Shown here: piece after piece, positions 14,039 through 40,600 of the stretch
Layout: every line of letters begins with the position of its first letter
How positions within the stretch are numbered: the first letter of the stretch is position 1
NCBI RefSeq assembly: GCF_031769215.1
Contig: NW_026782426.1
Location: forward strand, 186,001-250,000
DNA from: Ylistrum balloti
Taxonomy: Eukaryota
Direction: 5' to 3'
DNA: 64,000 bases
Made by a program: the position numbers and the translations under genes
Notes under the pieces: model-generated
Told to the model about the DNA's origin: nothing
The model's input: the letters and a program-made list of their open reading frames with translations, nothing else
Databases searched by the model: none

Positions 14039-15799
14039 GTATGATAAAACTCGGTTAATTACTAAAAATAGGTAAATATTAGAAATCAGTTATATTCATA
14101 GTATTTTTGATGAAGATCATATAAAATCTTTAAAGAGGTTATCGATATATTATAGATTTATTAATTAGGAGACATGTTCTGAATGTATCTCTATTATATA
14201 TGATCTGTACACCAAGTAGTACCTAGGTAATATAGAATGACATTTTTGTCAGAATTACATATAGGTTAAACGAGTACCTGTTCTATACGAAAACACGATA
14301 TATCTTTAGCCCTGTATACGTACATGATAATATGCGTTTGTCAAACAAGAAGCCTGAAGAGGTATGTGCAAACAGTCGTGATGTAATGCAAAGTTATTTT
14401 TAAGAAATTTGAATACAATACAGATCTGTTAAAAACAGTGTCGCTGAAAAGGTAACCATAGGCCTAATTGTTATTTGTTTAAAAGTCTTCATCCGTTGAT
14501 TTAAATAGTTTGTGTGGGTCTCCTTAAAATGGAGATAATTTCAGTAGGAATCCTGACAAGCACTGGCTGATCTAACTTAATGGTGTATTGTAGCACAGAG
14601 CTTTTAAATCAAGTAATTGTAATCTTTATAGAAGGAAATAACATTGTTGGAAGTGATTAAGAAAAACCAAACATTTTTGTTGTTTGGCACTTGAAATGAA
14701 TGAAGCAATTTAATCTGTTTTGATTGATGTTGTTTATATAAATTTAGTTAGTAGCCATTTAAATAAGTTAACCATGAAATATGAGATAATCTTTTAATAC
14801 ATTCCAAAATCTAATCCCCAAACACACCAAATCTGACTCTTATTGAGGGTACAGTTGACTTACAGAAAAACTAAAGCAATATTTGTTTGTAATCTAGTGG
14901 TATGTAAGTAAATTAGTGAGCTCAAGTCCTTAATATTCTGTCTTCTATCAACATTCTTTTATATATTGATCATGCTTTGAACGACATTCATCAACTCCAC
15001 ATCAATAAGAATGTTCCTAGAACATTAGAATAATTTCAGCATATGGTTCACTTATCATGGCTCACCATGACTTGATGATTGTCAATTTATGGTTACCAAG
15101 AACTCATTTCAATGTCTTTCAAAGCTATTATTAACATCAAAATATCTCTCCTGTTGTCAGTTTGGACAGGTGAAATTAGTAGGAATGCTCCCAGCCAAAC
15201 CATTTCAATATAGTGCATGGGGAAATCAGGAAATGAAAGGTCACAAGGTCATAGATTTTTATACAAATTATTAGGTAAATACACAAGTGTATATGTTGTC
15301 CACTTTCTGCTGGGATTACGATTTTAATATGTCATTGAACTTATTTTCTGTTGATTCAATAATTTACACAAGTATTTCATTCTGTTTAGCATATAACAAG
15401 ACAAACCTGTTATGATAGTCTGAGCCACGCAAATATCTTTGAATCAATTAAGCTAGATCTATGGAGAATTTCCACAAATAATATCAAATGTTTGTTTAAA
15501 TGATAAGTTAATTGAGGTGTGCAATTTCCATAACAACATAAGTAGATGATTTTGCACAAAATATTTTTCAAAAGCATACTTTGAAATCTTTACTTTGTGC
15601 AGAATATTCTTTAAGCTTTATTAGAGTTAGTAAACCCCAAAACTTACCTATGGGTGACTACACATTTTATTCTAATGATTAAAAGGCACTGTTTATAGGG
15701 TTTCATACTTACTATGAAGTAAGGATGTGCTTTACAAGCATGGCTATTTTTGTTTCACTTATCATTCGTATACATGTAAATCATGTATACAAAGCGCAC

Positions 15800-17515
15800 A
15801 ACCTCCATACTGTCAGTTTGAGACCAAGCCAAACCTTCATACTGTCAGTTTGAGACCAATCCAAACCTTCATACTGTCAGTTTGAAACCAAAGCCCAACC
15901 TCCATACTGTCAGTTTGAGACTAAGCAAAACCTCCTTACTGTCAGTTTGAGACCAAACAAAACCTAAATACTGTCAGTTTGAGACCAAAGCCCAACCTCC
16001 ATACTGTCAGTTTGAGACTAAGCAAAACCTCCATACTGTCAGTTTGAGACCAAACAAAACCTAAATACTGTCAGTTTGAGACCAAAGCCCAACCTTCATA
16101 CTGTCAGTTTGAGACCAAGGCCAACCTCCTTACTGTCAGTTTGAGACCAAGCCAAACCTTCATACTGTCAGTTTGAGACCAAGCCAAACCTTCATACTGT
16201 CAGTTTGAAACCAAAGCCCAACCTCCATACTGTCAGTTTGAGACTAAGCAAAACCCCCATACTGTCAGTTTGAGACCAAACAAAACCTAAATACTGTAAG
16301 TTTGAGACCAAAGCCCAACCTTCATACTGTCAGTTTGAGACCAAGGCCAACCTCCTTACTGTCAGTTTGAGACCAAAGCCCAACCTCCATACTGTCAGTT
16401 TGAAACTAAGCAAAACCTCCATACTGTCAGCTTGAGACCAAAGCCCAACCTTCATACTGTCAGTTTGAGACCAAAGCCCAACCTTCATACTGTCAGTTTG
16501 AGACTAAAGCCCAACTTCCATACTGTCAGTTTGAGACCAAAGCCCAACCTCCATACTGTCAGTTTTAGACCAAGCAAAACCTCCATACTGTTAGTTTGAG
16601 ACTAAGCAAAACCTCCATACTGTCAGTTTGAGACCAAACAAAACCTCCATACTGTCGGCTTGAGACCAAAGCCCAACCTTCATACTGTCAGTTTCAGACC
16701 AAAGCCCAACCTTCATACTGTCAGTTTGAGACCAAGGCCAACCTCCTTACTGTCAGTTTGAGACCAAGCCAAACCTTCATACTGTCAGTTTGAGACCAAG
16801 CCCAACCTTCATACTGTCAGTTTGAGACCAAGGCCAACCTCCTTACTGTCAGTTTGAGACCAAAGCCCAACCTCCATACTGTCAGTTTGAAACTAAGCAA
16901 AACCTCCATACTGTCAGTTTCAGACCAAAGCCCAACCTTCATACTGTCAGTTTGAGACTAAAGCCCAACTTCCATACTGTCAGTTTGAGACTAAAGCCCA
17001 ACCTCCATACTGTCAGTTTTAGACCAAGCAAAACCTCCATACTGTTAGTTTGAGACTAAGCAAAACCTCCATACTGTCAGTTTGAGACCAAACAAAACCT
17101 CCATACTGTCGGCTTGAGACCAAAGCCCAACCTTCATACTGTCAGTTTGAGACCAAAGCCCAACCTTCATACTGTCAGTTTGAGACCAAAGCCCAACCTC
17201 CATACTGTCAGTTTGAGACCAAAGCCCAACTTCCATACTGTCAGTTTCAGACCAAAGCCCAACCTTCATGCTGTCAGTTTGAGACCAAAGCCCAACTTCC
17301 ATACTGTCAGTTTGAGACCAAAGCCCAACCTCCATACTGTCAGTTTTAGATCAAGCAAAACCTCCATACTGTCAGTTTGAGACCAAAGCCCAACCTTCAT
17401 ACTGTCAGTTTGAGACCAAAGCCCAACCTCCATACTGACAGTTTGAGACCAAGTCCAACTTCCATACCATCAGTTTCAGACCAAGTCCATTCTCCATACT
17501 GTCAGTTTGAGATTA
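15800..17515. repeat. 32/33-bp minisatellite, about 52 copies
   Basis: Unit CATACTGTCAGTTTGAGACCAAAGCCCAACCT(C/T). It generates the spurious RPKPNLHTVSL ORFs. Confidence 0.95.
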
Positions 17516-17600
17516 CCATGTCTTACTACAGAACAAAGTCAAAGCCCAACATGAGGTAGAACTTGTTGATTCTATCCTGTCATTGTCCCAGCACTATAGC

Positions 17601-18292
17601 TTAATGTGGCTTCCTTAAGGTGTTAGTGGTTTCTCTTCTCTAATGGGTTATTTGTCAATGGATGACTGGAAACTGACCACACTCTCTTAATGTGGCTTCC
17701 TTAAGCTGTTAGTGGTTTCTCTTCTCTAATGGGTTATTTGTCAATGGATGACTGGAAACTGACCACACTCTCTTAATGTGGCTTCCTTAAGTTGTTAGTG
17801 GTTTCTCTTCTCTAATGGGTTATTTGTCAATGGATGACTGGAAACTGACCACACTCTCTTAATGTGGCTTCCTTAAGCTGTTAGTGGTTTCTCTTCTCTA
17901 ATGGGTTATTTGTCAATGGATGACTGGAAACTGACCACACTCTCTTAATGTGGCTTCCTTAAGTTGTTAGTGGTTTCTCTTCTCTAATGGGTTATTTGTC
18001 AATGGATGACTGGAAACTGACCACACTCTCTTAATGTGGCTTCCTTAAGCTGTTAGTGGTTTCTCTTCTCTAGTGGGTTATTTGTCAATGGATGACTGGA
18101 AACTGACCACACTCTCTTAATGTGGCTTCCTTAAGGTGTTAGTGGTTTCTCTTCTCTAATGGGTTATTTGTCAATGGATGACTGGAAACTGACCACACTC
18201 TCTTAATGTGGCTTCCTTAAGCTGTTCGTGGTTTCTCTTCTCTAATGGGTTATTTGTCAATGGATGACTGGAAACTGACCACACTCTCTTAA
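17601..18292. repeat. 86-bp tandem repeat, 8 near-identical copies
   Basis: Unit starts TTAATGTGGC at 17601, 17687, 17773, 17859, 17945, 18031, 18117 and 18203. Confidence 0.95.
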
Positions 18293-19964
18293 TATGGTTT
18301 TCCTGTTAATTTGTATTTGTTTGAAAATAATGGAAAAACACATCAGAATAACTTCATATCTTTTTAGTTTGCATATAATGTCATGGAGCTCTGTTAATAT
18401 GATTTTCCTGTTAATTTGTTCCTGTTTGAAAATAATGGAAAAAACACATCAGAATAACTTCATATCTTTTTAGTTTGCATATAATATCATGGAGCTCTGC
18501 GAAAAGCTGATGATGTATTACCTACTGGCATGTATTAATAGGAAAATGTGCATGTTGACAAAATGATTTCTCAATTAAAACCTCAATTGAATCATTATGA
18601 CATATTGCTATTAATCTCTTTGTATAGGGTTGGTGATCTTCGCCAAATCAACTGTTAAATCAACATAATTAGTTGTAACTTCCATCTTTCAAAGCTTCTC
18701 AGTTTGCATTATCTACACTGAAATTTCACGATATTTTTACCCGACCAAATATTTTTTACCACAAATTTGACAGTCACACACTTCTTTCCAGGGTGATTCT
18801 TTAAGCCAAGTTTCAGTTATGAATCATCTTTCTGAAAATGTTTGACTAAAAGTTTTACTCATCAAGCTAACAATGCATGAAGAACAGAAAAAAATATTAC
18901 TCCAAGCAGTGTAATCAATGAAAGAATAAAATGTGGTATAATGGTCCATATCTGATATCCCGGAGGACAGAACTGACAATCTGAACAGCTTTTATTCACA
19001 GAACAATGATATAAATAATGAACTGCAAGTTTTAGTGCTTTTTCCAAAGAGTGGCTAGGAAATGGTTTCAGATTATTGGATTACTGTTGTTGAAAAAGGA
19101 ATAAAAAAATAAACAAATGCTGACAATGTTTGGAAGCTTAACACTCATAATCGATTATTCAGAACTAAAAACAATATTTAGAATATGAGAAGTAAAACAT
19201 TTTGTTTTATTAGTTTGAGGGATGGTTTTTTGCAGAATCAGCTTGTCTGTCCATCAGTCCGTAGACAAAATTTATATGACTAATCTGCAAATGTGCATTT
19301 ACTCATTTTCAGTTAATTTTCTTAAAATTGAATTTACAGTACGAAATAGAGTTTTACCCCTGAAGTGATTTTGCATTTCAACACCATTTTAGAGAGTTAT
19401 GCCCCTTTTCTGTGGAAAATGAATACAGTATTGTCCTGCTGTCATTTGCTCAATTTCCATTGGTTTATTTTTAACATTTTGTTATATGGTGCCATAAGAA
19501 GCTGTGCCACTAAGGAAGATTTTGTATATTTGTTCTATTGAAGGGATTTCATGCCTCTTTATTTTGTGAAACTGATGCTATGTATGCATTCACTCATTAT
19601 TAAATGCATTTGTTTTTGAAATAGAAAGTCTTTTCCGTTCTGACCCCTTTCTACAACTGTAATGTGTTGTGTTTCTAGACTTGTTTCCCTCTTACAACTA
19701 CTCTAACTAATTTGTTTTATACCATGCAGCCCATGCCTGCCAACTTTTCAAAATTCTCATGGATTTTGAGATTATATTTTGTCATACATGTAGTGTCCTA
19801 TCCATATCATACTGTATAAATAATTGATAATTGTGATCATGCATTGTGCAACCATCCAGAATGTACTCCAGCATGGGGATAGAGTTCCCTGAAAAATATA
19901 TTGATTCAAAGGCCAGTTCAATGCTTCCTCCACTTCTGGCATTTTTTTCTGTTTTTGTTTTTGG

Positions 19965-20256: not shown

Positions 20257-22993
20257 CTAATTTTGTCTTGTTTTATAAGCAGAAAAAATGCAGATTCTTA
20301 GCTAAGGACAATTCAGGAGTATCCAATTTTAAAGAAAATTATGACTTAATTTTCCTGAGCTATAAAAAAATAGGTTACTTCAAATTCAGGTTTTAAAATC
20401 CCTGACATTAGAGAAGTGTTTCGAAAAGATCCATTTTGTCTCATTTAAATTCATTGTTTCTGCAGAGTTGATTTATTATTAACAGATCTGAAGTGCAGTT
20501 TTTGTCCACTCTCGCCAGAAATGTAGGGAATTCCATGACTAAACCATAAGAGATTCTCTATTCCTTCAAAGCTAGACAGGTCTAGCACAGATTTCTTTTT
20601 GAGCTTGATGGTATTATTACACGACATGAGATAAAGCTTCTGTCTGGCTAGATGTTGTACAATACAGATACAAATCACTTATAATGAATCGATACAACCA
20701 GAGTACTTCTCAGCTCAGCTACATCATACCTTAATGATTTTTTCCTTAACAATATATACACTACGAGTACATTTATTATTTGCGTTTTGTTGTTGTACAC
20801 AGGAACTCATAAACACTATTAGAGTTGTATCAGGATGGATAAAAAACAGGTTATTGTTGTGTTTACATCTTTTAAGATCAAATCACAGCAGTACTGGGTA
20901 GAAGACATGTGCTTATCTAATATTAGAAAGCGTCTTCACAGTGATGTTAAATATGGCTTTCAAAAAACTGGTAACCATTGTTTGATTCCGATCGCAGCTC
21001 TCTACATGAGTTTCCTGGTTCACTTCACAATCTTTATTCACCGTTTGATCGTTTTATGGAGCAATATAATTTTTATGATCCGAAGATTGCAAATATGCAT
21101 CATGTACAATGTATTTGAAACAGGTACAAGGTGTTTGAAACGGGTGCAAAGTTTTTGAAAAAACACAAAACATAAAATGTGCTGAAGTCCAGATAAAGAC
21201 TGAATCTATCAACTTTTTATGTGTGTCTGGAGTCAATAAATAATTAGGGGATAGTGTCCTTGTTTTTATATATATACATGTACTACGAGTTCGATAATGA
21301 ATTTTGGTTTTAACATGAGATGATGTTAAGCTATGTCCACTTTCAAGTCAAGTTGTCCATAAATTTTGGTCAAGATGTAGGTCAAGGCATATAAAAAGAC
21401 TTAAAATATATCTCTGCATGGGATATCTGTCTATTAATCATTGCTTATACTGATTCCTAATGTACGTACCTGAAACTTATGTCTATTTCTGAATGCCAAA
21501 GGTATTTATTCACTGAAGTAGATATATACTAGTAAAACAAGACATTGACAATTAGTGATGTAGACTGACAACGCATTTCCATTCAAATGAAGATTGGGAT
21601 TTATGTATCATTTTGTATAGAATTATCAGGTAAAGGTAGGAGACAATACTATGTGATGTATAATTTTATTTAGTTAAAGCCGAAGCCTTCCCCCGGGAGA
21701 AACCGGTCGGCATTAAAAAAAAAGTAATAAAGCACCGTTAACAGAGTACGTCAGGTCGTGTTGTGATTGCACCTCCCTGTTCATTTGATTTAGTTGTGAT
21801 GGTATAACTGCAGTTAATCGTTGATTTGAGAACATAACTGACTCTGTGACTGTAGGCCTAGCTGTTAAGCTTTACTCGGCAGGAAATTGGAATATATCAC
21901 TAAGATAACCATCATCATACTCTTCACTTCACATTTTGATGACACATTTGAGCATGTTGTTTTCATAAATTTCTTGAATGTCTTGGTTGATCAGCTTCAA
22001 CAAAATAAATAGCTGCCATATTTGGAATCTTGTCAGGATTATCTCCATGGCAACGACTTAGCAATTCATGAGTATATTTTTAAAACATGAAAAATTAGCC
22101 AATAAAATGTGTCACATAACCTTTATTTTAGAATATCAATCCATACAGACAACTATAGAAAGTCAATAGAATGTCAAAATAATCTGAATTATGTTTAAGT
22201 GAAATTTAATAGGGTAGGTTTGTGCTTTGTTCCATGTTCTATACCAAGGTCTGTGAAAAGTCTTGATTACTTGAGATAATTTGTATACTTTTCTGCTCCA
22301 TGACAATGAAGTCTGTGAAATGAAGTGATGAAAAATAATTTTGGATTATGTAAATTTGTGGCTAATATTATTAAGGAATGATGTCATGTAGAGAAATATT
22401 AAAGAGTATTGTTTTTTTTTCTATTTTATTGTTCAGTTGGCAGACATAACTGCTGAATCTATTACTGTTGCACATAAAACCATGAAATGATGTGTCTGCC
22501 TCTCATCAATAGTTGTGGCTTGGGGATGATGATTGGTATTTGCAGATACAATACCTTATGTGTAGGTGACGAGGCTAGTTTACGACTATTCCTAACCAAT
22601 TCTTCGATAAACATAGCTGTCTATCACACAATTTGTCAATATCAAGGGTCAACCTAATGCATGTAGTTTGGGCTAGTTTTGGTGTAATATGAGATGTTGA
22701 CTGCATTGTCTATGAATTAGGTCCTGTCATGGAATTTTGTAGAAATCAGACATAAAATGATCCAGTCAAAATGGTTTTTAAGGCCGAAGGTTAAAAAAAA
22801 TATCAGCACTTACTTACGGCTGTCAAGATGCCTGCTTGTTTTTCAAGATTATCTTTTAAGTCAGCTTGTACAAATCCTCTCCAAGGTCATACAGTTAGAG
22901 TGAATCATTATACTTGGCCTGACTATCTCATACTGGCAGCTTGGAAAGAAATTTAATGGAGTAAACTATATTCCTTTCTATTTCATTTGATCA

Positions 22994-23393
22994 TGTAACC
23001 CTGGAAAAATACAAGCCGCAATATACCACTCGGCTAGAGAGAACTTCTCTTTAGCTCGATTGGTTGAGCGTCAGACTAGTAAGCCAGGGGTTCGATTCCT
23101 AGCGGAGGCATTGAGATGAAAAATGACCTCTGTTACATTGGCTCCCATGTAGTGACCAGTGAATAGTACTTAGCCATGCCCCACCGGCATCGCTGTAACC
23201 CCATGGAAACTTGAGGACGAGTTATCTCCTGGAGGGGGAGTATGTAACCCTGGTAAAATGCTAGCGGCAATATACCACTCGTCTAGAAAGAACTTCTCTT
23301 TAGATCGATTGGTTGAGCGTAAGACTAGTAAGCCAGGGGTCACGGGTTCGATTCCAAGTGGAGGCATTGAGATGAAAAGTGACTTCTGTTACA
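22994..23393 (+). mobile_element. Complete miniature LTR retrotransposon (TRIM) with tRNA-Thr-like sequence in each LTR (Helenus-type)
   Basis: LTR1 22994-23137 and LTR2 23243-23393, both TGTAAC...GTTACA. PBS-like TGGCTCCC at 23139, PPT GGAGGGGGAG at 23231-23240, 4-bp TSD ATCA (22990-93 and 23394-97). A box TAGCTCGATTGG and B box GGTTCGATTCC within the LTR. Confidence 0.9.
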
Positions 23394-23879
23394 ATCATAT
23401 TATGGAATATCTACAATTGGTGATGGCTGGGGCCCATCATGAGTCCCTGACGGAGCCCCTACAAGAATTCAAGCCCTGAAAGAGGTTGTCAGTAATGTTA
23501 CAGAACCCTTGGATTTTAAAGATCACTTCTTGTTCATATCTGTCTTTTTATCATGACTGAAGCAGATTTATACAACTAACATTACAACTGCAGTAATATT
23601 GTTATACAATAATTACATTCAATTACAAATTTAAAACCCACTGTAGTCAATCACACAGGTAAGGCTATGTTATTTCCTGTGGAGGTGATATGTACTAGTC
23701 ACCACCAGTTTCTATTATAATGCATTGAGATGACATTGTAGTGTTCCTGCAGGTTTCAACACAATATCTTTAATTATAGATTAGTATTGTATGTCACTGT
23801 TTTTATGCTTGGGCATGCCTTCACACCGGCCAACAATGGTATTGTAACAAGGAGCATTTTTTAATTGATATGCATGGTA

Positions 23880-24760
23880 TCATCTAGTGCAGTAGAACCT
23901 AGTATTATTTAATTGATACCATCGAGTGCAGTATAACCTAGCATTATTTAATTGGTACCATCTACTGCAGTATAACCTAGCATTATTTAATTGGTACCAT
24001 CTACTGCAGTATAACCTAGTATTATTTAATTGGTGCCATCTACTGCACTATAACCTGGCATTATTTAACTGAAATGCATGGTATCATCTACTGCAGTATA
24101 ACCTAGCATTATTTAATTGGTACCATCTACTGCAGTTTAACCTAGCATTATTTAATTGGTACCATCTACTGCAGTATAACCTAGCATTATTTAATTGAAA
24201 TGCATGGTATCATCTATTGCAGTTTAACCTAGCATTATTTAATTGGTACCATCTACTGCAGTATAACCTAGCATTATTTAATTGGTGCCATCTACTGCAG
24301 TATAACCTGGCATTATTCAATTGATACCATCTACTGCAGTATAACCTAGCATTATTTAATTGGTGCCATCTACTGCAGTATAACCTAGCATTATTTAATT
24401 GGTGCCATCTACTGCAGTATAACCTTGCATTATTTAAATGGTACCATCTACTGCAGTATAACCTGGCATTATTTAATTGGTACCATCTACTGCAGTATAA
24501 CCCGGCATTATTTAATTGGTGCCATCTACTGCAGTATAACCTAGCATTATTTAATTGGTGCCATCTACTGCAGTATAACCTAGCATTATTTAATTGGTGC
24601 CATCTACTGCAGTATAACCTAGTATTATTTAATTGGTGCCATCTACTGCAGTATAACCTAGCATTATTTAAATGGTACCATCTACTGCAGTATAACCTAG
24701 CATTATTTAATTGGTACCATCTACTGCAGTATAACCTTGCATTATTTAATTGGTGCTATA
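23880..24760. repeat. 39-bp minisatellite, about 22 copies
   Basis: Unit GGTACCATCTACTGCAGTATAACCTAGCATTATTTAATT; offset 39 (23953 to 23992). Confidence 0.95.
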
Positions 24761-30758: not shown

Positions 30759-30909
30759 TCTAACAGAGGTCATTTTTCATCTCAATGCCTCCACTAGGAA
30801 TCGAACCCCGGACCCCTGGCTTACTAGTCTTACGCTCAACCAATCGAGCTAAAAAGAAGTTCTCTCTAGCCGAGCAGTATGTTGTGGCTTGCATTTTACC
30901 AGGGTAACA
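30759..30909 (-). mobile_element. Solo-LTR-like copy (151 bp) of the tRNA-containing TRIM
   Basis: Reverse complement aligns end to end with LTR2 (23243-23393), with intact A and B boxes. Flanks CCAA/CATA do not form an exact TSD. Confidence 0.85.
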
Positions 30910-31632: not shown

Positions 31633-34600
31633 GTGAGTATTGCACATTTGAATTTTCATGTCATGTATGTGTATATAAACGATAGGGTCACATGCATTTG
31701 TTACATTTTTATATGCCCGTCGAAAGATGGACATATTATGGTATGGCCCTGTCCGTCCGTCCGTCCAGCATCCGGCGTTAACTTTTATTTGTCCGGAGAT
31801 CTCCTCCTGCATTTGTTAGCCGATCTTTATGAGACTTGGTAGGCTTAATCACCATGATATGAAATTGTTTCTTACTGAACGGGGTTTTGATTTGGTGATT
31901 TGAACAAGAGTTATGGCCCTTTGTTTATTTCACTATAGAAATCTTGTCCGGAGATCTCCTTCAACATTTTTCAGCCGATCTTTATGAAACTTGGTAGGCT
32001 TAATCACCATGATATGAAATTGTGTTTTCCTGAACGGGGTTTTGATTAGACGATTTGAATAAGAGTTATGCCCCTTTTCTGTTTTGGATATTCACGGGTG
32101 TATTTTGTTCCGCTTTGCAGTACTCTTGTTGATACATTATGGACTTCATACAAAAAATCCATCTCAAAAATATTAACATCCTGTTGGTGTCAGACTCCAT
32201 TTAATGACATCATAGTAATGTTGTTGACACTGAAATTTGCTATCAATAGTTTCTGTGAAATCATTTTAGACATTACACATCATTTAAGATGTAACACAGC
32301 ATTTGATTGGTCAATCAACATTGATTTAATGCTGTTGGCAAAGTTTGGCAAATTAGGCCAACTTTCATATGATTTTGAATTACACATTTAAAAGGCTGAC
32401 ACTTAATGAAATTGATTATTATCACTTTACCTGTTTGAAATATTAAGTCAGATTTTAGTCAGAAATGTTAAAATTCTGATAGGAAGAAGATTAGTTTGCT
32501 TGAAATTTTGTAAGAATCCAGTCGAACACAGATTCAGATGAAAAAAGTCTGGTTGGTTTCTATGAGAAAAGTTTGCCTTAGAATTATGCCCTTTGGTAGC
32601 TAGTCCACTGATGATATGCTAAAAGTCAATGTTTTCCAGTGGTTTCAGTTTTTGAGGATATGATAGGATGAAGAAATAAGAGTATGTGATTTTTTTAAAT
32701 CGATCATACTGCTGTTAATCTGTAAAACTTGTTCTGTTTTGAGATGAAATCTCAATTGACCTGTTGTGATTGTCATTTGTCTGGCGTCATCCGGCATCTG
32801 TCATATGTCTTAAACAATTTACATTTTCAACTTCTTCTCAATAACCAAAAGGTCAAGGGTCATGAGAATGGACCAGTAGCATGCTGGAATGAAGAGCTAC
32901 CAATAAATGACCTTGACCTTCATTCAAGGTCACAGGGGTCAAATATGCTAGACTACAATAACAGACAGTGTTATCAGTTCAATTGAAAAGTATGCCTTCA
33001 AACTTAGAAGCAGTAAAACATTTGTAAGTATTCGTCTTTCTGTTCTGTTCTGTTTGCCCCTATGCTGGAACTAATGGACAGGTTGCTCACCTGGCCTGGT
33101 GAACTTATGGTCTATTGCAGCATCTGTTGTCTGTCTGTCCTTAGTTTTCAGACAAACTGCGATCAATCATAAACAATTGAATAGATTTTGTCCAAAATCC
33201 CCCAAATATCGGGATGAGGGGACCCAATTTTGTATAAATGGTGGTTTTGACTTCGAGCTAAAACAAATATCAAATTTTGGTATTTGAATATTTGAATATT
33301 AATGCTGAAAATTATGTACATGTGCATATATTTAACTAGACACCTGTGTTACATGACTAATTGATATTGCTTTATTTAACTTTTAAAAGGAAAAAAATGT
33401 TGGAAATTTCATATTTGATTTCAATGAATCATATCTTCGATTTGAACATGTCTGTAAAATCTGAAGAGCAAAGACCCAAGTTGCATTGTACATTGGAGGT
33501 CTTTTGGCACTTGTAGCCAGCTGTGATTTTCTTTGCTAGCTATGCTTTTCTTTGCCAGCTATGCTATTATAGGAATTATTTGATTTCGACCAATATTTAA
33601 GTGAAGCTTTATCACGTAATTGATCTAAAGGGGACTTGATTTTGTGTAAAAATGGTGGTCTCTGACTCCCATGGGGCATAAGGGTCATGCCCCAATAGGG
33701 GAAAAGAGCTAATGATTTGAAGAAACCTTCCTCTATAGAAATGGATCTGTCTCAAGGGTGAAGGAGAATCAATTTTGTATAAACTTTGGTTGTCGGCCCC
33801 CTGAGGCAGGAGGGGCAGGGCTCTGCTAGAGAAATAGAGCAAATTTTTCAAAATTGGTCTGAAACATCTTTGGGTGATTTAGACTCCTCAGATTATGTAA
33901 AAAATGATGGATCAAGCAATTGTGTCCATGCAACCAAACTAGGTGATTGATACAGGAACTAGAAGATGTATGAAAATTTGGTTACAGGACTTTTTAAAAA
34001 TCACAACGTTGAAAGAGATGATCTCATTTCAAAATTAGCAAATTTTGATTCTTCATCTTTTTATTTTTACAACAGCTGCACCAGGTACTCCTGCTGTCAC
34101 TGGCTTCCCTAACAACGCAATTGTTGGTGAACTAATCACAGCAACATGTACATCAGTAGGAGGCAACCCTGACCCAACAATGTCGTGGTACCAGAATTCA
34201 ACAGTAAAGCAAAACACTTACACTCTAGAGGTAATACTGGGTCCTCTACAGGTAAAACCATGTACAGGTAGACAAATCATACTTTGTCATCAACAGGTAA
34301 ACCCTGTACAGGTACACAAGTCATACTCTGTCATCAACAGGTAAACCCATGTACAGGTACACAAGTCATACTCTGTCATCAACAGGTAAATCCTGTACAG
34401 GTACACAAATCATACTCTGTCATCAACAGGTAAATCCTGTACAGGTACACAAGTCATACTCTGTCATCTACAGGTAAACCCTGTACAGGTACACAAATCA
34501 TACTCTGTCATCAACAGGTAAACCCTGTACAGGTCCACAAATCATACTCTGTCATCAACAGGTAAACCCTGTACAGGTACACAAATCATACTCTGTCATC

Positions 34601-37600
34601 TACAGGTAAACCCGTGTACAGGTACACAAATCATACTCTGTCATCTACAGGTAAACCCTGTACAGGTACACAAATCATACTCTGTCATCTACAGGTAAAC
34701 CCTGAACAGGTCCACTAATCATACTCTGCCATCAACAGGTCAACCCTGTACAGGTACACAATCATACTCTGTCATCAACAGGTAAACCCATGTACAGGTT
34801 AAAATGTGTTTTGGTAGACAAATAATACTAGGCCGTGAATAGATAAAAACATACAGGTTTAGTAAATGTTATCATTCCAATTCTTTACTAGGACAGGACT
34901 ACCAGGATTTTAATTTTGTCAATGAAGTTTTAGTGCTTTATATATCCTTTTGAATCTTTTCTTCATTAGAACTAGTTCATTGAAATTGTATAAACTGATG
35001 TATTTATTAATTTAACAAGATTTTATAAACTCTTGTAATGAGTTGTTCACTCATCTAGTGAGTCAAATTTTGTAAACTATTGAAGTGTTTGATTCTCTAA
35101 ATTCCTGAAATGTTAGTTATCTATTGTAAATATATGTAACATACTTTGATTTTTTTTGTGACAACAGGTTTCAGGCAATGTAAGGACAACAATGAGTAAT
35201 TACAGCTTCATTGTGATACGGGCTCATGAAAACACTGATTTTTACTGCAGAGCAGGGAATAACCAAGCTAATGTGACTACACTTAAACGTTTCAGTGCTG
35301 TCTATGGTATGTGTTTTCATGTCGTATTAATTTACTTGAGTTCAACTTGTAAATATTGATTATTTTAATGTAAACCTGAAGGTTAAATGAATAAAAAAAT
35401 CCCAAAATTGAAAACACCATGTTATGCGAGATGAGTATAATATATATATAAGATCATAAATTGATAACAAAACTTTCAAAGGAAATGAAAAGTCAATTAG
35501 CAGATATCACGTTTGATTTTTAGCTGAACTGGTCCAAAAGATCCTGATCTTTGACAGTCTTGATTGTCTGTCTATCAATATTGCTAAGGATTCTTTCCAA
35601 AATTTGGTATGAAGCATTTATAGGGGGAAGGGAATCAATTTTGTATAAACAGTGGGGCTCAGCAATTAAGAGCGAGAGGGACAGGACCCAATAAGGGAAA
35701 TAGAGCAAAGATTCTTCTGTAGGAATGACAGGATTTTTTTCCCAGTTTGGTCTGAAGCATCCTTGATTGAAGGAAAATCTATTTTGTATAAAATGTGCAT
35801 CTGGTCCCCCTGGGGCTGAAGGAGCTCTGCTCAAGAAGAGAAATACATAAAAATCTTAAAAACCTTCTATAGTAATGTCATGGGTTCTTTCCCAATTTGG
35901 TCTTAAGCCTCCAGGTGTGAGGGGAAATCAGTTTTATATAAATGTTAGGGGTCTGCCCACCTGAGGCAGAAGGGTTGGCCCCAATGCAGGAAATAGAACA
36001 AATTCTGTTAAATCCTCCTTCTTTGGAAATAATAGAATTTTTTCCAAATTTGATCTGAAGCATCTTTGGGTAAAGGGGGACTAATGTATCAATTAAGGGT
36101 CTGACCCCTTGGAATCAAATGGGTGAGGTCAAGTAGGTGTGACAGAGAAATAGAAAGGATATCTGTCTTCTTCCAATTTTGGTCTGCAGTATCATTGGAT
36201 TGTGGGGATTTGATTTTGTTTAAATCAAAGGTCTGACTTCTTTGCAAAAATGGTTATAATCTTTTCAATTAATTTCAATTTGGCTCAAGCAATGGTGAGT
36301 GATACTGGTCCCATGGGCCTCTTGTTGATGTTTCCTAGAAAATTACTTCAGGCCGCTCATTTTAATAAAATTCTGAATCATAAAAATGAATAGATGTTTA
36401 TTTGGTTTCATTTAGCATCCCAATGTACACATAATGTCCTGTTATGCGAAGATAAAATATTGCATCTAGGTTGTATATAATATTCCAAGGATATGCTGAG
36501 TTTTCCAAGGATTTTCTGAGAATATAATGTGGAGGATCAAGTCTTGACTCATCAAGACATTCCTTGATTTATAATTACTCAATCTTGACTAATTCAGACT
36601 TCTCTGGATTTAACTATCCTGACTAATTCAGACTTAAATGACAATAAGAGAGTCAACATCCATTCTGGATTTTTTTCTGGATATCCCTAGACATCTTGCT
36701 CCAATACTGTCCTGGATTAAATTCTGGGTATCTCTAGATATCCTAATCCACTACTGACCTGAGCTATCCAGACTTAAATGAAATAAGAGATACAACATCC
36801 ATACTGTCCTGGATTAAATTCTGGATATCTCTAGACTAACACAAATGATAATTATGGATAATCCAGGGATATCCATGCATTTTTTCGCAGGGGTATTAGG
36901 TCAAGGGAGATAAATCTAGATAACATAACACTGCTTTGGCTAATATGGCCATAATATACATTAAAAACATTTAAATTCTTTATGAAAAGCAAATACTGAC
37001 ATTATCTTTTACAATGAACTAGTCTTACTGCCAGTAATTCATAAATTTATCATTTTCCAAAAAAATATACTTGTATCAAGCAATTTTCTTGTTATCATAA
37101 TATAGATTTTTATATTGATAATGAAAATGGTCTTACTGAACTTAACAGCTTTCAGATGTTCTCCAATGTGCTGTGTATTTCTCAATTTTCCTTGGTATTT
37201 CTTCTTATTATTATTATTTTCTTCTTATTAGTACCATGAATATGAAGCAAACCAACTTGAATTACCAGCGCAGCATTTATGTAGCTTAAAATTGATAAAA
37301 TCAATCTATTCAATAGTCCCAACTTTTTTGTATTTCATATTGAAAATGAATGATTGAAAGCAATTTACATTGATATTTTAAAATACTGATGGAGAGATCT
37401 CTCCAACATCGGCATCTTTGAGTTTTGAAAAAAAAATTCAAATGATGCCACTTGTTTTACATATTATATCCAAGTGAACAGGATTGAAAATATTTCCACT
37501 TTAAAAAAGCAATACATAGTATTTCAAATACAGTACTAGGAAGTATTAATGTCAATTTTGAGGATTTTCATCATCATCATAGGAGGGCACTAAGATCTCT

Positions 37601-40600
37601 GTGGGATGTCTTGTTAACTGGGAATGGCTAACTCAGATTTGTCATATTCTATGGAGTCAACTTCATTACATGACTATGGATATGCTCTTGTATCTTATAT
37701 CTGAATATCAACACATTAAGTGAAATCCTGTTCCCAAGATTAAATTGAGTCCGAGATTTCTACAGAAGGTTCCAGATGATAGGTTAATTTCATATTTTCT
37801 TGACATTTTCACAGTTACTCCTGGAAATCCAACCTTGACTGGCTCGGCGACCTTATCTGCAGGGACATCAAACACTTGGCACTGCCAGACTGTAGGAGGT
37901 TACCCTGCACCTGGTATTGCTTGGTATTTTGGAGGTGTGGTTGTCACCGCAGACCTCAGCAATGTTACTACATCACAGAGTACATATACTGTAGATAGCT
38001 GGTATACCCGTACAGTTCAGGCAGTGGACAACGCCAAGCTGTTGGAATGTAGAGTCAGCCATCCACAGACACTAACCACACCTAAGATTACTACCAAAAC
38101 CCTCACTGTGTATTGTAAGTATCAACTATCACTAAAACTCTCACTGTGTATTTTAAGTATAGACTATCACTAAAACTCTCACTGTGTATTTTAACTATAG
38201 ATTACCACTTAAACTATCAACATGTATTGTCTTATCTCTATAAATGTTTCAATTTTATCACTTTCACAGTAAAACTACATGAATTTGAGAAAATTGATTT
38301 GATATTGATGTTAACTAAGTTGGAAAAAACAAGCTTTTGAGCAAAGTTGTATCCAATTATCAGTTTTAGGTCATCTAGTTCAGAGGATAAGTAAGCTTAA
38401 ATGTCACACTATGATATTGAGGACCATTAACATTTTTACCAAAAAATAACTGCTTCTGCTTCTATGCAACCCAACTTTGCTTGTTTTATTCCACCAGCGG
38501 CACCAACCGTTGCCATTGCACCAGACCAAAGTAATGTACTGACTGGGAATAACCTAACACTTACATGTTCGGTTACAAGTTCTCTGGCGAATTACATTGT
38601 CACCTGGTACAAAGAAGGTAGTAGTACAGCCTTGACCTCTGGATCTAATTACGTAGTAACTGGAAACACTGTCACCATATTGAATGCAGCATCAGCTCTT
38701 GCTGGAAACTACTACTGCACAGCAACCAACTCAGCTGGAACCTCATCAAATAGCAATAACGTGAACGTTGTCCTCTACAGTGAGTGATGTTAATTTTCAT
38801 CTCATGTTTCAACCTCTGCCATATCATGTTGGGGAGAATATAGTGTAACCCATGTCTGTCCAATCCCAAATCTATATCATCTGTTGGGAAGAATATAGTG
38901 TAACCCATGTCTGTCCAATCCCAAATCTATATCATCTGTTGGGGAGAATATAGTGTAACCATGTCTGTCCAATCCCAAATCTATATCATCTGTTGGGGAG
39001 AATATAGTGTAACCCATGTCTGTCCAATCCCAAATCTATATCATCTGTTGGGGAGAATGTAGTGTAACCCATGTCTGTCCAATCCCAAATCTATATCATC
39101 TGTTGGGGAGAATATAGTGTAACCCATGTCTGTCCAATCCCAAATCTATATCATCTGTTGGGGAGAATATAGTGTAACCCATGTCTGTCCAATCCCAAAT
39201 CTATATCATCTGTTGGGGAGAATATAGTGTAACCCATGTCTGTCCAATCCCAAATCTATATCATCTGTTTGGGAGAATATAGTGTAACCCATGTCTGTCC
39301 AATCCCAAATCTATATCATCTGTTGGGGAGAATATAGTGTAACCATGTCTGTCCAATCCCAAATCTATATCATCTGTTTGGGAGAATATAGTGTAACCCA
39401 TGTCTGTCCAATCCCAAATCTATATCATCTGTTGGGGAGAATATAGTGTAACCATGTCTGTCCAATCCCAAATCTATATCATCTGTTGGGGAGAATATAG
39501 TGTAACCATGTCTGTCCAATCCCAAATCTATATCATCTGTTGGGGAGAATATAGTGTAACCCATGTCTGTCCAATCCCAAATCTATATCATCTGTTTGGG
39601 AGAATATAGTGTAACCCATGTCTGTCCAATCCCAAATCTATATCATCTGTTTGGGAGAATATAGTGTAACCCATGTCTGTCCAATCCCAAATCTATATCA
39701 TCTGTTTGGGAGAATATAGTGTAACCCATGTCTGTCCAATCCCAAATCTATATCATCTGTTGGGAAGAATATAGTGTAACCCATGTCTGTCCAATCCCAA
39801 ATCTATATCATCTGTGGGGGAGAATGTAGTGTAACCCATGTCTGTCCAATCCCAAATCTATATCATCTGTTGGGGAGAATATAGTGTAACCATGTCTGTC
39901 CAATCCCAAATCTATATCATCTGTTGGGAAGAATATAGTGTAACCCATGTCTGTCCAATCCCAAATCTATATCATCTGTTGGGAAGAATATAGTGTAACC
40001 CATGTCTGTCCAATCCCAAATCGATATCATCTGTGGGAGGGAATATAGTGTAACCCATGTTAAGACAAGAGCTTCAACATGTGCAAGAAAACATTGTTTT
40101 ATAATTCCTTTTGTGTATGAAATGTAGCTATAAATGATCTTAGCTATAAACAATTAAAATGACATGAAAAACTGAACAGGTAACTATTATTTGCATATTT
40201 CTTGTCCATTGAGTATTATTATTAAGATCAATTACTGTTACAGCTATTCCGACAAATGCTGTCATCACCCCGACCAGTATAACTGTGGAGCAGGGTCAAT
40301 CCTTTTCAGTATCCTGTGCAGCCACTGCTTCACCACTCAACAGTCTAAGCTACTCCTGGGAATTTGGTAGCTCCGTCCTATCAACCAACTCTGAGCTAAA
40401 TGTGACCAATGTCCAGAAAGAGGACAGCGGGTCATATATATGTACAGCCACAAATTTGTATGGCAATACCACGGAGCCTGTAACCGTTGATGTCCAATGT
40501 AAGGATGGAGTATCTAGCATAATAACCTCTTCAGAAACATTATAAATTTACCTTCTCTTTAATTATCAGCTTGTAAAAAGGAGTTGTTGTAATCACTTAC

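Follow-up and report, generated by a model that had tools for sequence, protein, structure and literature searches.

TRIMs whose LTRs carry a tRNA-derived segment were named Helenus, with scallops included among their hosts (Kojima 2024, PMC10886601). The same paper lists 51 Helenus families from pteriomorph bivalves, several of them tRNA-Thr-like, gives 4-bp duplications for the animal families, which it regards as Gypsy-dependent, and states that tRNA finders fail on most Helenus families. The published scallop families are Helenus-1_PeMa of Pecten maximus, Helenus-2_ArIr of Argopecten irradians and Helenus-3_MiYe and Helenus-1_MiYe of Mizuhopecten yessoensis. Their LTRs start with TGTAACCCTGG... 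and contain an upstream hairpin, a palindrome and a tRNA-Thr(AGT)-like part with the loop CTAGTAA; their PBS reads TTGGCGCCCA(T/C)GTAGGGAC and the interior ends in ...GGAGGGGGAGTA. All of these parts are found in the family described here.

Other known elements share some of this design. [quoted passage not shown] Pol III transcription of Cassandra was shown by experiment, whereas the promoter here is a putative one. Retrozymes are also small non-coding LTR elements that depend on Gypsy and carry a structured RNA module unrelated to the LTR of the helper; this module is a hammerhead ribozyme in retrozymes and is tRNA-like here. The tRNA-derived SINEs (SINE2) resemble the element in their tRNA-derived head with boxes A and B, their shortness and their abundance, but they lack LTRs, a PBS and a PPT, carry a LINE-type or A-rich tail, rely on LINE enzymes for their movement and make duplications of variable length.

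The window is the whole stretch of DNA that was analysed (64,000 nucleotides). The element occupies 22994-23393 on the + strand and consists of an LTR of 144 bp, an interior of 105 bp and an LTR of 151 bp, 400 bp in total. Its features are listed below.

22990-22993, + strand: left copy of the target-site duplication, ATCA (4 bp)
22994-23137, + strand: 5' LTR, 144 bp, TGTAAC...GTTACA
23031-23058, + strand: imperfect palindrome (..GGCTAGAGAGAA-C-TTCTCTTTAGC..) with its centre at the first tRNA-like base
23045-23110, + strand: tRNA-Thr(AGT)-like segment of the 5' LTR, with box A at 23052-23063, loop CTAGTAA at 23076-23082 and box B at 23089-23099
23138-23242, + strand: non-coding interior of 105 bp; most family copies have 104 bp
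23139-23156, + strand: primer-binding site, decayed, 16/18 complementary to the tRNA-Lys(UUU) 3' end plus CCA
23231-23240, + strand: polypurine tract GGAGGGGGAG, with TA between it and the 3' LTR
23243-23393, + strand: 3' LTR, 151 bp, the full family length
23294-23366, + strand: tRNA-Thr(AGT)-like segment of the 3' LTR, with box A mutated (TAGATCGATTGG, 23301-23312) and box B intact at 23345-23355
23394-23397, + strand: right copy of the target-site duplication, ATCA

Both LTRs start with TGTAAC and end with GTTACA. Their global alignment contained 132 matches, 12 mismatches and one 7-base gap, the 7 bases being absent from the 5' LTR between the equivalents of the anticodon arm and the T arm. 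An earlier note on this DNA had described paired LTRs with these ends, about 12 substitutions and a 7-bp deletion apart, flanked by the duplication ATCA; the coordinates and the LTR alignment confirmed the layout, and ATCA was present on both sides. The interior begins with T plus TGGCTCCCATGTAGTGAC (23139-23156) and ends with the polypurine tract plus TA, and no open reading frame of at least 90 amino acids overlaps the element. The tRNA-like part has 66 nt in the 5' LTR and 73 nt in the 3' LTR, with the loop CTAGTAA and box B (GGTTCGATTCC) in both and with box A reading TAGCTCGATTGG in the 5' LTR. With 12 substitutions and a deletion between its LTRs, the window copy is old and belongs to the oldest copies sampled. 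It is probably no longer mobile, since two substitutions in the PBS, the 7-bp deletion in the 5' LTR and about 8% divergence between the LTRs have accumulated. Taken as a whole, the element is very likely an old, mutated insertion of a Helenus-type TRIM of the scallop lineage, with the life cycle proposed below.

The family was searched for in the window's own genome (648.5 Mb). This search gave 2152 first-look candidates, and the 43 relatives that were scored all covered the full 400 bases at 89-93% identity, most of them being 405-406 bp long. The full family form is 151 + 104 + 151 = 406 bp, and the family has on the order of a thousand copies. Because of the 2152 candidates and the 43 full-length relatives at 89-93% identity, a chance origin of the layout is excluded. 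When parts of the element were used in BLAST, LTR-interior-LTR was found at every locus among the 30 fetched. All 29 copies examined had this arrangement with TG..CA ends, some with a further interior-LTR. Target-site duplications of 4 bp were perfect in 25 of 28 independent copies, contained one mismatch in two and were missing in one.

Each repeat contains a tRNA-like part with boxes A and B, as would be expected if the locus consisted of two adjacent tRNA-derived SINEs or tRNA pseudogenes, or had arisen by local tandem duplication, rather than being an LTR element. This reading has practically no probability left and can be regarded as refuted: dozens of unrelated loci have the 255-bp unit spacing, a PBS and PPT, TG..CA ends and duplications of 4 bp, no SINE-type tail (A-rich or LINE-like) was present among the copies examined, and one insertion, described below, has a precise empty site. 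The uniform LTR-interior-LTR structure of the 29 copies also sets the element apart from the class of tRNA-derived SINEs. Rfam scans detected no 5S match in the element, which separates it from Cassandra, and no match of the hammerhead family in the LTRs at E values up to 10, which separates it from retrozymes. In annotation, the copies, on the order of a thousand, are best masked under a single LTR element rather than as tRNA-like fragments.

With a total length well under 1.5 kb, the element has the size of a TRIM, and it shows a tRNA-derived LTR segment with boxes, a PBS and a PPT, a 4-bp duplication and homology to Helenus. The homology to the published consensus sequences was assessed with word look-ups and by-eye comparison. 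Words of 11-19 nt from the LTR start, the anticodon region, the PBS and the PPT recur in Helenus-1_PeMa, Helenus-2_ArIr, Helenus-1_MiYe and Helenus-3_MiYe, and by eye a young copy is about 90% like Helenus-1_PeMa, Helenus-2_ArIr and Helenus-3_MiYe over the first ~120 nt of the LTR and aligns with them along the interior too. The sizes agree as well, with 151/104/406 bp for LTR, interior and total here and 151-160/105-115/417-425 bp in the published scallop families, and the duplications are of 4 bp in both. The shared words, the by-eye alignment and the agreeing sizes place the element in the known scallop Helenus lineage. Its interior resembles those of Helenus PeMa and MiYe-3; the LTR tail after the tRNA-like part is like that of Helenus-1_MiYe and unlike those of PeMa, ArIr and MiYe-3. 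Since young copies are only ~85-90% like any printed consensus (by eye), they apparently form a species-specific family from a scallop outside the three of Kojima 2024.

The name Helenus, which the earlier note had suggested, is correct as judged by words and by-eye alignment, and the other genomic copies retained the paired LTRs and 4-bp duplications on which that reading depended and carried no SINE tails. The suggestion that the family itself may be new was overstated, as clearly homologous scallop families had been published. What is new relative to the published class and scallop lineage is the primer, the activity, the helper candidates and the LTR palindrome.

Tandem LTR-interior-LTR-interior-LTR forms were observed at three places: L014/L017 (G000:C653:117843-118503), L026 (C181:295498-296158) and C173:151089-151752. 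Perfect 4-bp duplications flanked both of the two that were examined. Copies L019 and L027 (G000:C31:942900-943305 and 944969-945374) are separated by 2 kb, their flanks are identical and both have the duplication TTGT; they are a local segmental duplication including the element and not two insertions. Other Helenus families are present in the same genome, represented by L085 (G000:C593:64000-65400, - strand), L086-L089 and L067 (G000:C271:824716-827738). One of the families resembles Helenus-2_MiYe (palindrome core GGGGGAATTTCCC), and another, with about 50 pattern matches, resembles Helenus-3_ArIr (core GGAGCATGCTTC).

The LTR pairs of family copies differed by 0-12 mismatches, and those of L007 and L009 were identical over 151/151 bases. 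To the L007 copy and its flanks, contigs of four public runs (X1-X4) were placed. In run X2, a single contig joined L007 positions 1496 and 1907 and thereby revealed a precise empty site, in which the element (406 bp) was absent and only one of its two 4-bp duplication copies was kept. Contigs of X1 and X3 ran from both flanks into the element (filled site), and those of X4 ended exactly at both element boundaries. Because the site is empty in X2 and filled in X1 and X3, the L007 insertion is polymorphic between individuals, and the family moved recently and is currently mobile. Summed contig depth relative to the L007 flanks was roughly 1000x for the interior and 3800x for the LTR; these values are not a copy number, and they fit a family of about a thousand copies with extra LTRs. 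Being currently mobile, the family is a usable system for asking if an LTR element can be driven through Pol III by the relic of a tRNA.

The reference tRNAs for the LTR segment were the genome's own genes, collected with Rfam RF00005 and typed with ARAGORN. The LTR was best aligned to tRNA-Thr genes with scores of 45-48, compared with 14 ± 2 for shuffles; the window LTR scored 45 against the genome's own tRNA-Thr(AGT), and the anticodon loop was the same. Of 59 LTRs, 43 had an intact box A, 45 an intact box B and 50 an intact loop. ARAGORN at default settings called no tRNA in the window or in young LTRs, and only at 80% thresholds did it report a cloverleaf, at LTR positions 51-123, with inconsistent anticodon calls. 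The Rfam tRNA model gave no match at E values up to 10, also when one LTR of 151 nt was scanned alone. As neither ARAGORN (default) nor Rfam called a tRNA, the stems are broken. The alignments show that the LTR segment is derived from tRNA-Thr, and it has kept boxes A and B but not the cloverleaf, in line with the tRNA-Thr(AGT)-like segment with unpaired stems noticed at first sight. As both programs call nothing at the element, the expected misannotation as tRNA pseudogenes did not occur with them. Clusters of tRNA genes were also recorded in the genome (L031-L060, e.g. G000:C706:243206-262596, C1175:1786-34342 and C498:775155-801122).

The family PBS was the 18-mer TGGCGCCCATGTAGGGAC in 21 copies, with one further copy carrying C at the tenth base, and in 22/29 copies the 18-mer was perfectly complementary to the genome's tRNA-Lys(UUU) plus CCA. 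In L007-type copies, the match to tRNA-Lys(UUU) extended to 21 nt. The tRNA-Lys(TTT) genes end in two variants, ...GAGTCCCTACATGGGCG (8 loci; this variant is also given as ...CATGGGCG) and ...CGTGGGCG (5 loci), which differ by a compensated acceptor-stem pair, T6-A67 or C6-G67. These two gene variants explain the T/C difference between the PBS of PeMa/ArIr and that of MiYe. The same PBS was aligned to Aplysia tRNA-Lys(CTT) with a one-base gap in Kojima 2024 (PMC10886601); the ungapped match is better than the gapped one, and host tRNA-Lys(UUU) is the predicted primer.

Priming of reverse transcription by tRNA-Asp had been proposed in the earlier note from an 8-nt match, and the window copy does read TGGCTCCC. 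This match is created by a G-to-T change private to the window copy: the corresponding position lies within TGGCGCC in 24/29 copies, is part of CpG-decay variants in four and is T only in the window copy. Since the family 18-mer is, as described, perfectly complementary to tRNA-Lys(UUU) plus CCA and published relatives share the PBS, the tRNA-Asp primer is refuted at the family level and has a negligible probability; its revival would need young copies with TGGCTCCCC....

The sense strand of the LTR was predicted to fold into a rod of -58.3 kcal/mol (z -5.0), whose core is an imperfect palindrome. The 3' arm of this palindrome is formed by the 5' strand of the tRNA acceptor and the start of box A, and the 5' arm by the sequence upstream. 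It was located in three Helenus families of the genome as follows.

Window 23031-23058: palindrome in the element of the window
L009:1538-1565: palindrome in copy L009
L085:1122-1149, - strand: palindrome in L085
L089, about 1484-1507: palindrome in L089

In good copies of the three families, the best palindrome of the LTR was at this place, with arms of 14, 17 and 12 pairs. With G.T pairs allowed, arms of these lengths were reached by 2/200, 0/200 and 13/200 shuffles, respectively; when A.C was allowed instead of G.T, the arms were shorter. In decayed copies, the best palindrome was not at the expected place. As the place was found in good copies and not in decayed ones, the evidence for the palindrome is moderate. 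An inverted duplication of the whole tRNA 5' half was considered and rejected, only the inner ~20-nt arms being significant (23 vs 12.8 ± 2.2) and the outer part not.

The same palindrome design was seen by eye in published LTRs of oysters, pen shells, pearl oysters, mussels, scallops, the coelacanth and cyprinids. Between published families, the outer arms GAGCTAG / TTTAGCTC are conserved (by eye), and the core of 10-13 nt varies yet is self-complementary, as in GGGTTAACCC, GGGAATTTCCC, AGAGAA-C-TTCTCT, GAAGTACTTC, GGAGCATGCTTC, GGCTGCAGTC and GGGAATATTCCC. The pairs of the palindrome that are not Watson-Crick are nearly all G.T on the sense strand, as counted by eye in the published families. 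LTR-11_DR and other Helenus of ostariophysan fish and LTR1/2_LCh of the coelacanth have 4-bp duplications and, by eye, the same LTR design as the element here, with a hairpin, a self-complementary core of 10-12 nt, TTTAGC and the tRNA-like part. They differ from it in their interiors (43 bp in cyprinids), in the letters of the palindrome core and in their primers, tRNA-His in the fish Helenus and tRNA-Lys(CTT) in the coelacanth. The words palindrome, hairpin and inverted repeat do not occur in the text of Kojima 2024 (PMC10886601).

We tentatively suggest, at somewhat less than even chances, that the palindrome is a selected sense-strand hairpin, acting in RNA or in plus-strand DNA, and is common to the Helenus of bivalves, the coelacanth and ostariophysan fish. 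If so, these animal Helenus families would share one origin instead of having many, and the hairpin would mark the start and end of the genomic RNA and join the ends for strand transfer when R is very short. Of all the findings, only the conserved, covarying palindrome could bring something new to what is known of how such elements work.

Sites that share the PBS outside the TRIM were searched for with a pattern in which the PBS was required and the next bases of the TRIM were excluded. This gave 22 non-TRIM sites in about nine families, and two families of candidate helpers were extended (L083 and L084).

G000:C569:1133400-1142377, - strand, and C1371:27936-30958: Ty3/Gypsy family L073/L082/L083, LTR about 846 bp
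G000:C103:704267-713200: second Gypsy family L063/L065/L084, PBS in the C variant, gag and pol split over several frames in this copy

In L073/L082/L083, CTGTTACA is followed by T and the PBS exactly as in the TRIM, and the junction of PPT and LTR is GAGTA|TGTAGC, compared with GAGTA|TGTAAC in the TRIM. The frames of L083 are uninterrupted; they encode a 381-aa Gag with a PNMA domain and a 1445-aa Pol whose domains run PR-RT-RNaseH-INT, as in Ty3/Gypsy. At L073 the end of another pol precedes the 5' LTR, so the arrangement there is tandem. In the L063/L065/L084 family, the LTR starts with TGTAACCTGGGTTAAAT (TGTAACCCTGGTAAAAT in the TRIM), and its end GTGTTACA is followed by AA and the PBS. The Pol proteins of the two Gypsy families are 45% identical.

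When the LTR and interior of the TRIM were compared with the PBS-sharing elements by BLAST, no homology beyond the PBS was detected except in L067, which was rejected as a helper; it is a decayed relative of the main family with an LTR 69% identical. The TRIM and the candidate helpers resemble each other only in the PBS, the spacer, the end of the PPT and 6-12 bases at the termini, and several Gypsy families share the PBS. The two Ty3/Gypsy families are candidate helpers and no more than that. The search for an autonomous element with matching termini and PBS, which the earlier note had proposed, thus yielded two candidates, and these support the Gypsy dependence of animal Helenus put forward in Kojima 2024.

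The conserved boxes, the size of the element and the asymmetry of T-runs between the sense and antisense strands suggest that the tRNA-like part of the LTR may function as a Pol III promoter. On the sense strand, TTTT was certain in only 1/25 elements; one other copy was flagged but seems to be in the wrong orientation. A-runs, equivalent to T-runs of the antisense strand, were present in 24/25. The window element has no TTTT on its sense strand. The absence of TTTT is not significant by itself, as 37% of composition-matched shuffles also had none. The first TTTT on the sense strand of the 3' flank was at a median distance of ~100 nt, and at 120 nt in the window copy.

According to the proposed life cycle, boxes A and B in the 5' LTR would serve TFIIIC and Pol III, and transcription would begin close to the first tRNA-like base. 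Because the sense strand contains no run of four T, transcription would pass through the interior and the 3' LTR and stop at the first T-run of the flank, at the median ~100 nt on. The RNA would be packaged by the Gag of a Ty3/Gypsy helper, the minus strand would be primed by tRNA-Lys(UUU) at the PBS and the plus strand by the PPT, and the integrase of the helper would recognise the TGTAAC/GTTACA ends, insert the DNA and make the 4-bp duplication.

The TRIM could also move in this way with RNA supplied by Pol II or by read-through from a neighbouring gene. The tRNA-like part would then have been retained for a role other than that of a promoter, for instance in RNA structure, in packaging or in defining the ends. 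In keeping with this, the cloverleaf is gone and yet the sense LTR folds into the very stable rod described above, box A is overlapped by the covarying palindrome, and no Pol III terminator (T-run) lies inside the LTR or elsewhere within the element. Such a source of the RNA is nevertheless unlikely, considering that boxes A and B are the best-kept parts across all bivalve families while the stems decay, that 406 bp is a length suited to Pol III, and that T-runs are avoided on the sense strand only. The analogous Cassandra elements, which are transcribed from their own 5S promoter, likewise point to Pol III as the probable polymerase here.

The window contains a further LTR of the same family at 30761-30909 on the - strand, 89% like the 3' LTR of the element. 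Of the interior, only TTGG follows this LTR, whose ends are altered (GTTAGA) and whose 4-bp flanks do not match; the copy is a solo or truncated one. The window also has an unusual abundance of minisatellite arrays, with periods from 32 to 112 bp (23875-24754, 9082-11812, 15790-17512, 17600-18297, 34234-34799, 38827-40060 and many other places), and an array of 22 units of 39 bp lies 480 bp downstream of the element.
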